A stretch of DNA of 64,000 bases from Utricularia gibba (Eukaryota; Plantae; Magnoliophyta). The stretch's first letter is position 1. Every line of letters begins with the position of its first letter. Location of the stretch: contig CM007989.1 of assembly GCA_002189035.1 (NCBI GenBank), positions 868,001 through 932,000 of the forward strand, in the 5' to 3' direction. The translations under genes and the position numbers were made by a program. The notes beneath the pieces were generated by a model. The model had not been told where the DNA came from and did no database searches. It saw only the letters and a list, made by a program, of their open reading frames with translations. Below are positions 6,504 to 41,034 of this stretch, piece after piece.

Positions 6504-7388
6504 TCTTCATTTCTGCAAGTGTAGATATACATCAACAGAAATGAAGTGGGTAATGTCTTGTGGCGTCTGTTTTTTTTTTTTTTTTCTTCTTTTTCAAATT
6601 GCTTTGTTCATTGAACAAAGACTATCGCTATTGCTGTGTTCCCATTGGTTCTCTCTATTTCCTGGACCTGTTCCTTTGGGAGAACTGCTACTCCGACTCG
6701 GTCCCGATACGTTGGTTTCTTTATTTTATTTTAAAACTATATTATACCCTTTTAGATATTTCAGGAATTTGTTTGAGTTACTTTGGTAAAGTATTTTGAT
6801 TATTATAATTAAAACTATTTTTTTCCAAAAGTATGCATGTGTGTTTTTCAGTATACGTATGTTTGAATATGCAAACAAATTGATTTTAGATAATATTTTT
6901 CATAACTAAAACGTGGGAAATATGTACGTGGAAGAAGGAAAAACGTACGTGGCTATTGGTGTATCCAGGTTTTGAAGCGTTGAAAATCAAACGTGAATTG
7001 AGTGCAAGATGTGACTTAATGCATGAGCGGTCATCGGTCAATATTGCGTGTGTTGAATCAAACGCTCGAGTTTTGAATAATGATTTCGAAATATCAATAA
7101 ATTTCATTAAAAAAAGTCACTGTTGTACACCTATTATAATGATGATTCTTTGGATGCCTAGAAATAAAATCGGCATGATACCTGATTTGTGTTCTGAAAG
7201 AATTGGTTCTGTGGACTGGGCGTTGACTTCTCCTCGGCGGAAAGTGATCAAATTTAAAGTGCATTAACTCTAGGGTTAGGTCAGCCGTCGAGAGTCGAAT
7301 CTAATTCTCAGGCCACTCACACCGCCGCTTCACCTTCACCGCGTGTGTGTAAATATGCCCGGATTCTAAAGCTGTGAGGTTCAGAGAA

Positions 7389-8100
7389 ATGGAGAAAACT
7401 ACCGCTATAGTGGAAGAAACCTACGTCTACGACCGTGAAATCCTCCTCACGGTTCACAAAACCTCCGTTTTCTTCCCTGGCGACGGCTTCATCGCCTACG
7501 ATTCCGCCGGGAAAGTAGTCTTCCGTGTCGAGTCCTACACTCCTGATGGCGGCGACGCAGGCGAAATCGTACTCATGGACGGTGCCGGGAGATGCATCCT
7601 CACGGTTCATCGCAAGGTAAGGAGATCTGGAGTTCGATGTCACCGTAACCTACGCTTCCTGATTTCGAATCATGATCCAGAGACCTAGCCTGCACCACCG
7701 GTGGAATGGATTCATAGGCGAGGGTGCGGAGGGGAAGAATCCGATCTTCAGCGTGCACCGATCCTCCATAATCGGGCGGTCGACGATCACGGTGGAGGTG
7801 TACACGGATCCGAGCGAGGAGTACCAGATTGAGGGGTCATTTGCATGCCGGAAATGCTCGCTTCTTAACAGGGACAAGGAGGCGGTGGCGGAAATCCGAC
7901 GCAAAGTGGATCCGACGACGAACGTGGTCCTCGGGAAGGATGTATTCGTGTTGCTTTTACACCCTGGATTCAACGGCGCTTTCGCCATGGGTGTGATTCT
8001 GGCGCTGGATCAGATTCACGGCGCCCCCGACGAATTGGCGCCCGCGGAGGAGCTCCTCGATACGAGTACCCTTGATCACAATCACAACCGCTGCTGCTGA
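7389..8100 (+). CDS. LURP-one-related (Tub_2 / LOR family) protein
   Basis: Exons 7389-7616 and 7681-8100: LTVHKTSVFFPGDGFIAYD...RK|RPSLHHRWNGF...VAEIRRKVD...GKDVFVL...GAFAMGVILALDQI, a typical LOR pattern. Confidence 0.93.
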
Positions 8101-8469: not shown

Positions 8470-9650
8470 TTAGGCATCGTGAGCAGAAACCAGTTCCATT
8501 CTCCCTCCACAAAACTTTGGAAGCTGATCTTCGTCTACCTCTTCACGCAGCGTCGCCTCGACGCTCTTCTCCTCGACAAAAAAAATCTGCAACGAAGAGC
8601 ATGTTGCTCTCTTCACTGTGTTTCACCACCAAAAGTACTAACTAACACACCATATTTCGGAAACCAGGAGTAAATGATCTTGCCTTGCGCGCGGTGTTTT
8701 GGTCTATAAACGGGGAAACGAGTTTCCATATGACCATGAAGATGTAGGGCGCATGGATGATGAAGCATTTCCTCAGACTCTCTGGATAGTAGTTCTGCAA
8801 GACAGGATCCAAACGGCTTATCTAGTTGTCTGTTAAGTGGAGGTGGGCAGCAACTTGGGAGGGAAACTGCTTGCCTGTAGGATTGAGAGGCAGGAAATGT
8901 ATCCTCTCGCATCGCCATTCCTGTAGGCAAACCCTTGGAGATCGACAATTACTGTGAACTTCTCCTGGCCCTCCAGAATCCTTCTGAAAAAGTTGTCAAC
9001 TCGCACTTCTATTCAAGGGTGAAAATGGCGTTTTAAGCAGGCTTACCTGGAGGACGCTTTGTCGAGAACGTAGACCACCAACTCTGAGAAAATTGATCAA
9101 ACGTTTGGTGAGCAGAAACATCTTCATTCCCATGAAAAAAAGAAAGAAAAACACTTGAACCAGACTTTTGAATTCCACAAAGGCGTCTCCTTTGCAGGGA
9201 AAATGCTTGGCCCCGAGGATCACTGCAATAGGGCAACCTAATTTGTCTCTTCCCTGAATGAATACCTTCCCCTGGGCGATCTGGTTCATGATCTCTGCTT
9301 CTGAAATGAAGCCACTGGGAACGAATTCCCGTCTCCATTTCAAGTAATCGACGAACATGGCCGCAGCCTTCGGCACATCCATATCTCGCGCTCTAAGAAA
9401 TCTTCCAAGAGTAGCGTCGTCCACCCCTGCCGCGTGCTCAGAAACAGTAGCGATGAGGACCAGGACAATCATAAACTGAAACGATACACTCAACAAGCGT
9501 TCCACTTACCTCGGAGTCGGGGTCTTTGTCGCGAACGATGCCTCGCATCAGCACAAGCTTTCTGGTCACTTCCTCTAGAAACGCAGAAGAAGAAGCAAAC
9601 ACACATTTCTCCTGCTCCGCATTTTGGGAGTGTGATGCCAGACCAAACAT
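8470..9650 (-). CDS. Small Sec14/CRAL-TRIO lipid-binding protein
   Basis: Six exons: ...LMRGIVRDKDPDSE|GVDDATLGRFLRARDMDVPKAAAMFVDYLKWR...|KLVVYVLDK...|GQEKFTVIVDLQG...CLSILQ|NYYPESLRKCFIIHAPYIF...FIDQNTARK|IFFVEEK...DQLPKFCGG...HDA*. The last two introns need GC donors. The exact start ATG is uncertain. Confidence 0.93.
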
Positions 9651-9674
9651 GGTGTTTCGATATCCTCTTGATTT

Positions 9675-9793
9675 AAGCATGTGACAAAAGGCGTAGGCTT
9701 AGTAACTCGTGGTGGACGTTGCGGCACAACATCCAACAGTTAATGCAGCGGTCGTTTGGTATCCAAGGCCAGTCGTACTCACTGGTTGAGCTT
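9675..9793 (-). ncRNA. Candidate unannotated structured ncRNA downstream of the USE-TATA promoter (alternatively the 5' UTR of the Sec14 gene)
   Basis: Predicted start ~30 nt from the TATA. Hairpins CCAGU/ACUGG (loop contains UGAG) and UGGAUGUUG/CAACGUCCA. ANANNA-like AUACCA and a terminal ACA. No resemblance to the U1/U2/U4/U5/U6 sequences I can recall. Confidence 0.3.
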
Positions 9794-9816
9794 CAATTAA
9801 TACCACATGCTTCCTC

Positions 9817-9900
9817 ATATATAAAAGAAACATCTCAGTCAAATATTATCATAATCCGATGTGGGATAAACCAAACAGCTATCATCATGCGATGTGGGAT
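9817..9900 (-). promoter_or_regulatory. Plant snRNA-type promoter: two USE elements plus TATA box at Pol II spacing
   Basis: ATCCCACATCG (consensus RTCCCACATCG) occurs on the minus strand at 9890-9900 and 9857-9867. TATATAT at 9823-9817 lies 33 nt after the proximal USE. Confidence 0.65.
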
Positions 9901-10149
9901 AAAACCATTGAACCCACTTTTACCTCCATGCTCCAAACTCTTCATTTCTTCTAGTTTTCACTGAGATACCAAAAAGAATCCCACCCATGTTTCGTAACGC
10001 ACGTATTCAAATGATAATGTTCAACAATACTGTGCTAACTTTCTAGAGTTACCAAAAGGCCCAACTCCAGTCCCATAAAGGAGATGGGCCAATTTCCCTG
10101 TAAAGGCGTACGGAACTCAGATTGGGGACATTTTGAGTGAGAGTTAATT

Positions 10150-10801
10150 GGGGAACTAGCCCTCTGCAAAAAACAAGTTTGCTGAATGATCCTATCTGTA
10201 AATTCTTGATTATTTAGCCCTACTTTTTGTAGGTATTAGCTAAATAGTCCAACTTTTAGTATAAATAAAACTATTTAATTATTGATTACAAAAAATAATA
10301 ATAGAAAATCAAATATACATTTTATATATATTTATTTATTCATTAAGTTGTATATAACTAATATATAGCTAAAAATATATATATTTAATTATATAATTTT
10401 AAAAATATAACATAATTAATTATTTAGGGAGATATTAATATATGTAATTAATTCATTATTTAAAGAAATATAAATATGTACAAATAATATAGGTGTAATT
10501 GATTAATTTTTTACATAAATATATCAATGTTATGAATATATTTGTAAATGTAGTATAATTGTAATTAATGTATTATTTAAAGAAATATATAACATATATA
10601 AATAATATAAGAGCAATTAATTTATTATTTAATAAAATATATAAACATAATGAAGATTTTATAAATAATGAACTATGCTATATAATACATAATTATATTT
10701 ACAGGTATGTATTATTAAATAATTAATTATGTTATATTTTTAAATTTATGTTTTTAACTATATATTAATTATATACAATTTAATGAATAAATAAATAAAT
10801 A

Positions 10802-10843
<42 letters not shown>

Positions 10844-11006
10844 TTGATTTTCTATTATTATTTTTCGTAATCAATAATTAATTATTTTTATTTATACTAG
10901 AAGTTGGACTATTTAACTAATAACTACAAAAAATATGACTAAATAACCAAGAATTTCTAGATAGGGTCATTCAGCAAACTTTTTTTTTGCAGAGGTCTAG
11001 TTCCCC
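10150..11006. mobile_element. Non-autonomous foldback / Mutator-like element with long terminal inverted repeats
   Basis: GGGGAACTAGCCCTCTGCAAAAAACAAGTTTGCTGAATGA... at 10150 is mirrored by ...TCATTCAGCAAACTTTTTTTTTGCAGAGGTCTAGTTCCCC ending at 11006. Inverted similarity extends over 200 bp inward. The core is AT-rich with no ORF. Confidence 0.85.
10806..10837. repeat. (TA)n microsatellite inside the right arm of the foldback element
   Basis: Direct TA run visible in the sequence. Confidence 0.9.
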
Positions 11007-11453
11007 AATTGACCCCGACTTTTGACACATTCATTCACTCATGTCTGCCTTCTCTCTTAACTCTGGATTTGGTCGGTTTTTCTTCTTCTCAATGTTGTTG
11101 TCTAATGCAAGTAGGCCATCTTAACAAACCTTGTTGGAATTTGGGCCTTTAGTCTTTACATTTTCTCTTTTTAGATTAACAAAATTAATCCAATTAAATA
11201 AAAAGAAAATATTTATTTTTTCTCCTTGAAAATCGTGAATACCCTTCAAATAATCTTATAAAAAGCAAATTAAATCTAAATAATATTATATCTTCATGTG
11301 TGTATATATCTTTATCTTCAAGATCATGTAATGGATGTTGGACTCAGCTATCACGTCATTAAGACTTTTTTAAAATAAATCAAATTAATGTAAAATATAT
11401 AAAAAGTAATGAGAAATTAAATTATTAAAATAACTGGGACAGGGTAGAAGGAG

Positions 11454-40408: not shown

Positions 40409-41034
40409 ATGGTTCCTCAGAGGCGAAAGTTCCGAGGGGTGAGGCAGCGCTACTGGGGCTCCTGGGTGTCTGAAATCCGCCACCCCTTGTTGTGAGTATC
40501 TCTAGTTTCGTGTGTTTGTGAGGAAACAGAGAACCAGGATGGGTGGATCATTTTGGGTGTTTTTGTTTGGATATCGTGAGCAGGAAGCGGAGGGTGTGGT
40601 TGGGGACGTTCGACACGGCGGAGAAGGCGGCGCGAGCTTACGACGAGGCGGCGGTGATCATGAGAGGGCGAAATGCGAAGACCAATTTCCCCATTCCGGC
40701 GGAGGTCTTTCCGTCTTCCGCTTACACGTCCCTGGCGGCCATCCTAAACGCGAAGCTTCAGAAATGCGGCAAGTCACCGCCCTCTCCTTCTCTGACGTGT
40801 CTGAGGCTGGACACGGAGAACTCCCACATCGGCGTTTGGCAGAAACGGGCCGGCCCAAGATCCGGGTCCAGGTGGGTTATGACCGTGGAGCTCGGAAACA
40901 AGGGCCGGATTGCCGCCGAGGCGGAGCTCCCGGCGGCGGAGGTAGAGGGTGAGGCTGCACACGTGGCAGGGGACGTTGCGAGCGACGAGGAGGAAAGGAT
41001 TGCGCTACAGATGATTGAGGAACTTTTGACTTGA
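40409..41034 (+). CDS. SHN: AP2/ERF transcription factor, SHINE/WIN1 clade
   Basis: [27 protein letters not shown]|[24 protein letters not shown]; middle motif [22 protein letters not shown]; C-terminal motif [14 protein letters not shown]. Intron 40492-40583. Confidence 0.95.

Follow-up and report, generated by a model that had tools for sequence, protein, structure and literature searches.

A doubled snRNA-type upstream element and TATA box in front of a Sec14-like gene of Utricularia gibba: a candidate core promoter for a natural plant mRNA

Pol II promoters of plant U-snRNA genes (U1, U2, U4, U5 and U12) were described by Vankan and Filipowicz (1989) and Waibel and Filipowicz (1990), as cited in PMC545797, PMC8287931 and PMC5079582. 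In plants, a distance of 32–34 bp between the upstream element (USE) and the TATA box marks Pol II genes and a distance of 23–24 bp marks Pol III genes (PMC8287931), a distinction likewise drawn in 10.1101/2022.07.06.498962. USE and TATA box also occur in the Pol II configuration at the capped U13 snoRNA genes snoR105, snoR108 and snoR146, whose products, non-spliceosomal and some 130 nt long, have C and D boxes and are complementary to rRNA (PMC2875012). Formation of plant snRNA 3' ends needs a 3' box, for which the consensus is CA(N)3-10AGTNNAA (PMC5079582), and is uncoupled from the promoter, according to the same source, which cites Connelly and Filipowicz (1993). In Cuscuta a 10-nt USE has been recruited to non-snRNA genes, namely microRNA genes; their spacing is of the Pol III (U6-like) kind, and they have microRNA hairpins and end at poly-T terminators. 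Chimeric U2-promoter/mRNA genes were reportedly studied by Connelly and Filipowicz in Nicotiana protoplasts in 1993, and are said to have shown that an snRNA promoter can be separated from 3'-end formation in plants. Our search of the literature turned up no example of a USE driving a natural mRNA gene in a plant.

The locus described here lies in a 64-kb stretch of the Utricularia gibba genome (contig CM007989.1, positions 868,001 to 932,000 of the forward strand). This whole stretch is called the window, and positions are counted from its first letter. A sequence-only reading had reported two exact USE copies in a 33-bp tandem duplication on the minus strand, with TATATAT 33 nt past the proximal copy. 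Strand reading together with pattern, composite and repeat searches recovered each of these elements (Table 1). The direct-repeat units span 9847–9870 and 9880–9903, and the two copies of the region diverge outside these 24 nt. Within the units both USE copies are exact at 11 of 11 positions, while their flanking bases have diverged. The distal copy lies 66 nt from the TATA box, i.e. three helical turns farther out than the proximal one.

Table 1. Positions of promoter, leader and gene features within the 64-kb window
Feature	Position	Strand	Description	Basis
Distal USE	9890–9900	-	Exact ATCCCACATCG; matches RTCCCACATCG	Strand reading, pattern search, repeat search
Proximal USE	9857–9867	-	Exact ATCCCACATCG; 33 nt upstream of TATA	Strand reading, pattern and composite search
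Tandem duplication	9847–9903	-	Holds both USE copies; 24-nt units, 92% identical, 33-bp period	Repeat search
TATA box	9817–9823	-	TATATAT	Strand reading, composite search
Inferred transcription start zone	9787–9798	-	25–36 nt after first T of TATA	TATA position and USE-to-start distances in 10.1101/2022.07.06.498962
Candidate RNA of the sequence-only reading	9681–9793	-	Here read as putative 5' leader of the Sec14-like mRNA; reaches 9651 if the second ATG is used	Rfam, folding, motif scan
Hairpin 1	9769–9785	-	CCAGU/ACUGG; 5 bp, 7-nt loop, 17 nt in total	Folding
Hairpin 2	9713–9735	-	UGGAUGUUG/CAACGUCCA; 9 bp, 5-nt loop; encloses ATG of upstream ORF	Folding
Upstream ORF	9673–9732	-	19 codons and stop; overlaps ATG at 9680	Motif scan
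Sec14-like exon 1	9510–9680	-	In-frame ATGs at 9680 and 9650; donor GAG/GTAAGT after 9510	Strand reading, splice-aware fit
Sec14-like exons 2–6	8470–9436	-	9436–9166, 9083–9047, 8980–8875, 8794–8684, 8586–8470 (stop included)	Pfam, splice-aware fit

The pattern expected of Pol II snRNA-type promoters consists of RTCCCACATCG, a USE-to-TATA distance of 32–34 (up to 36) bp, binding of SNAPc, and a start about 66–67 bp after the USE. The locus contains the USE consensus as two exact 11-mers and a TATA box at 33-nt spacing, and as judged from these motifs the proximal USE and the TATA box have the Pol II geometry of plant snRNA genes. The earlier assignment to an snRNA-type Pol II promoter thus agrees with the published plant rule (PMC8287931). 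From the TATA box and the USE, transcription can reasonably be expected to start within the zone given in Table 1.

The composite TCCCACATCG-N30-36-TATAWA occurred once in the 64-kb window, compared with a mean of 0.00 in 100 dinucleotide-preserving shuffles. Base composition alone predicts about 0.07 exact 10-mers in a window of this size and roughly one full USE plus TATA composite per 100 Mb. A third exact TCCCACATCG is present at 40822–40831 on the plus strand, within an AP2/ERF-like coding ORF (40543–41034); it has no TATA box after it and is most likely a chance match. Three further sites in the window match the USE with one mismatch, and none of them is followed by a TATA box. GGCCCA and TGGGCC motifs resembling site II elements were also seen at 10040–10100 on the minus strand, about 270–300 nt upstream of the inferred start. 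These motifs also fit RGCCCR, which we take to be the upstream-element pattern of monocot snRNA genes.

Such expectations bear on whether the USE copies do anything at all. They could be non-functional passengers, in which case ordinary factors at the TATA box would drive the Sec14-like mRNA and SNAPc would have no part in it; such passengers could stem from a chance match duplicated by slippage, or be what is left of a decayed mobile element or snRNA-type gene. One chance composite per 100 Mb is in keeping with this explanation, as is the origin of both copies in a single duplication event, so that they count as one occurrence. Against it, by our own estimate only some 0.02 chance composites per 100 Mb would lie at promoter distance from a start codon and point towards it, roughly 50-fold fewer. 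In addition, both USE copies have stayed exact while the flanks of the repeat units diverged, and the block at 9650–10140 has no second copy anywhere in the window, which also answers, within the window, the earlier concern that the block might be a dispersed repeat. We regard the passenger explanation as somewhat unlikely. The expectation of about 0.02 per 100 Mb argues that the arrangement is not accidental; it speaks to the placement of the motifs and not to their use by SNAPc.

The segment downstream of the inferred start had been described as a structured RNA. Both of its hairpins exist, as do an ANANNA-like AUACCA at 9762 and the terminal ACA at 9682, which is followed directly by the ATG at 9680, but the stability of the fold is ordinary. 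The sequence from 9793 to 9681 folds at -29.8 kcal/mol compared with -25.2 ± 3.2 for shuffled versions (z = -1.43), and 21 of 200 shuffles were equally good; for 9800–9640, z was -1.32 relative to shuffled sequence. From these data we conclude that the candidate segment is no more stable than chance gives. Within hairpin 1 we also observed GTGAGT, a hexamer resembling a 5' splice site (9782–9777, minus strand), about 12 nt past the inferred start.

A search of the whole window against Rfam 15 at the gathering score gave no matches. At a permissive E ≤ 10, the search of 9300–10100 assigned the candidate segment to no known family, whether of plant snRNAs or of snoRNAs. The only two matches, SNOR75 upstream of the promoter (E = 3.8) and a human lncRNA model (E = 6.1), were rejected as noise. 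The motif scan found no Sm site and no C box in the candidate region, and D-box-like CTGA was present only far downstream, with none in range. No 3' box was detected between 9800 and 9300 on the minus strand, even with the consensus relaxed. Two earlier statements, that the segment matches no spliceosomal snRNA and lacks a canonical 3' box, are therefore borne out, whereas the proposal of a new snRNA-, scaRNA- or H/ACA-like RNA found no support in Rfam at E ≤ 10, in the fold, or in Sm, C, D or 3' box motifs.

Individual RNA classes were considered in turn. H/ACA RNAs, including scaRNAs of this type, were taken to have two hairpins of about 50–65 nt with pseudouridylation pockets, an H box between them, and an ACA 3 nt from the 3' end. 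This reading fails because hairpin 1, with 5 bp and 17 nt, is too small for such an arm and because the ACA at 9682 directly precedes the in-frame ATG; no H/ACA family was found in Rfam. U13 snoRNA was ruled out for want of a C box, telomerase RNA for want of a template-like repeat, and a microRNA precursor on a longest stem of about 10 bp.

There remains the more general alternative that Pol II makes a separate small RNA here, capped, about 100–130 nt long and snRNA-, snoRNA- or scaRNA-like, with the Sec14-like mRNA starting on its own or arising only by read-through. The promoter geometry would suit it, since Pol II snRNA genes and the genes for capped U13 snoRNAs have the same one (PMC2875012), and so would the two hairpins, the AUACCA and the ACA. 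The segment nevertheless has none of the 3' box, Sm site, C/D box or Rfam match to be looked for in such an RNA, its stability is ordinary, and its first hairpin is far below the size of an H/ACA arm. Moreover, the ACA adjoins the in-frame ATG at 9680, leaving no space for a separate Sec14 promoter. An independent small RNA is in our judgement improbable.

A transcript of Pol III type 3 is more improbable still. It would run for about 105 nt and end at TTTT (9689–9686), in the manner of U6, telomerase RNA or the USE-driven microRNA precursors of Cuscuta. USE promoters are able to recruit Pol III, and the only T4 run that the motif scan found in the candidate segment does lie about 105 nt past the predicted start. 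However, the USE-to-TATA spacing is 33 nt rather than 23–24 nt, the T run has just four bases, and the segment has no telomere-template-like repeat, no microRNA-sized hairpin and no Rfam match. We consider it very unlikely that Pol III transcribes this segment.

The gene directly downstream is a different matter. A splice-aware fit to four homologues gave a six-exon model that encodes 260 aa without stops when the first exon is taken as 9650–9510. Pfam identified CRAL_TRIO_N (PF03765, E = 2.8e-7) in exon 2 and CRAL_TRIO (PF00650, E = 7e-13) in exon 5. We conclude that the Sec14/CRAL-TRIO gene is real and intact. Its closest proteins are small Sec14 proteins annotated as PITP3-like or 'random slug protein 5', at 55–60% identity; the best homologues all belong to Lamiales (Paulownia, Handroanthus, Salvia, Sesamum and Erythranthe), and the model is 56% identical to Paulownia P0158. 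The Lamiales homologues are 70–75% identical to one another, compared with 55–60% to the Utricularia protein, which suggests that the latter belongs to a long-branch lineage or is a divergent paralogue. Introns 4 and 5 have apparent GC donors on the minus strand, CAG/GCAAGC (8875–8873) and AAG/GCAAGA (8684–8682); no GT donor gave an open frame for either intron.

An RNA run from the same organism contained 24% of the sampled words of 9300–10100, indicating that part of this region is expressed. No TATA box other than that of the USE promoter was found between this promoter and the Sec14 ATG. Upstream, at 10143–11013, lies a foldback or MITE-like element that is AT-rich, with inverted arms (10143–10339 and 11013–10816) 90% identical over 198 bp, and beyond it a divergent gene for an EF-hand mitochondrial carrier. 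With these neighbours, the USE-TATA block occupies the very place in which a promoter for the Sec14-like gene has to lie. On the other side, an apparent two-exon gene on the plus strand (7374–8100) runs towards the Sec14-like gene and meets it tail to tail; judged from ORF translations alone, it looks LURP-one-related (DUF567-like).

Six homologous loci were compared, from Ranunculus, two metagenome contigs, Paulownia, Handroanthus and Sesamum alatum; these are distant homologues, so that the comparison has no bearing on conservation in recent time. Even when one mismatch was allowed, the USE was absent from the fetched upstream flanks (about 0.9–3 kb) at six of six, and none of the six showed similarity to the leader or the promoter. 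The absence of the USE from these distant loci means that the element is no ancient trait of the gene family, and points either to a lineage-specific acquisition or to the loci being paralogues. It weighs against a core-promoter role of the USE, as does the lack of a published precedent, and is also what would be expected if the USE copies were passengers. The lack of similarity to the leaders of homologous loci is a further point against an independent small RNA. Searches for closer relatives covered proteins and contigs. A homologous-protein search with Sec14 exon 2 gave no match, and an exhaustive search of representative proteins gave a best identity of about 62–65% in exon 2. Searches seeded with Ranunculus P0012 and Paulownia P0158 returned nothing above 60% identity overall, and an exact look-up of two ORFs of the window found no contig.

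Set beside the described systems, the locus shares with the plant U-snRNA promoters (U1, U2, U4, U5 and U12) the exact RTCCCACATCG, the TATA box and the 33-nt spacing of the Pol II class. It differs from the U-snRNA genes in its doubled USE, in having no Rfam match, Sm site or 3' box, and in the ORF that lies 110–140 nt downstream. It resembles the capped U13 genes in the Pol II arrangement of its USE and TATA box, and differs from them in having no C box and no D box in range. As in Cuscuta, the USE is found at a non-snRNA gene, but here with Pol II spacing, no microRNA hairpin, and an mRNA downstream. The chimeric U2-promoter/mRNA constructs share the mechanism that we assume for this locus; those were artificial, whereas the Sec14-like gene is a natural one. 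The encoded protein is like the small angiosperm PITP3-like Sec14 proteins (Paulownia P0158, Ranunculus P0012) in its CRAL_TRIO_N and CRAL_TRIO domains, its length of about 260 aa and its collinear exons, and unlike them in an identity of just 55–60% and in the upstream USE, which the loci of these homologues lack.

The sequence-only reading had also raised the possibility that a Sec14 mRNA is under snRNA-type promoter control. With an intact gene directly downstream this possibility fits best, and we infer, as the somewhat more probable state of affairs, that the Sec14-like mRNA has the two USE copies and the TATA box as its core promoter and the candidate RNA as its 5' leader. The doubled USE and TATA would act as an snRNA-type (SNAPc-type) Pol II core promoter serving this gene, with initiation at about 9787–9798. 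Without an snRNA 3' box the polymerase would not be stopped; because 3' ends form independently of the promoter, read-through into an mRNA is to be expected from a USE promoter that no 3' box follows. On its way to the coding exons the polymerase would copy a leader of 110–140 nt, this being the distance between the inferred start and the two ATGs; the leader holds the 19-codon upstream ORF and a single hairpin of 9 bp. Splicing would follow at GAG/GTAAGT, a strong consensus donor, and the transcript would become a normal polyadenylated mRNA.

For the Sec14-like gene itself this is an ordinary finding, and the case concerns one promoter at the level of its sequence: the motifs with their spacing, the missing small-RNA features and the intact gene are seen in the DNA, and the start site, SNAPc as the factor acting on the USE and the nature of the transcript are inferred. 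The most probable reading is that a natural mRNA gene here carries a doubled upstream element of the snRNA type, which makes its promoter a mild variant of a kind already known. We suggest only tentatively, and with more doubt than confidence, that ordinary protein-coding genes have acquired the USE in this plant lineage, such that a small set of mRNAs is initiated via SNAPc and may be regulated together with snRNA-type transcription; the microRNA genes of Cuscuta, to which the USE was likewise recruited, would be a parallel. In plants the USE counts as a hallmark of snRNA-type genes, and searches for new non-coding RNAs such as telomerase RNA and U13 have relied on it, as have searches for microRNA genes in Cuscuta. 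If a doubled USE at Pol II spacing does drive a natural mRNA gene, USE-based searches for small RNAs would return such genes as false positives. If true, it would also mean that plants do not restrict SNAPc-dependent initiation to small RNAs, which would agree with the old protoplast result.
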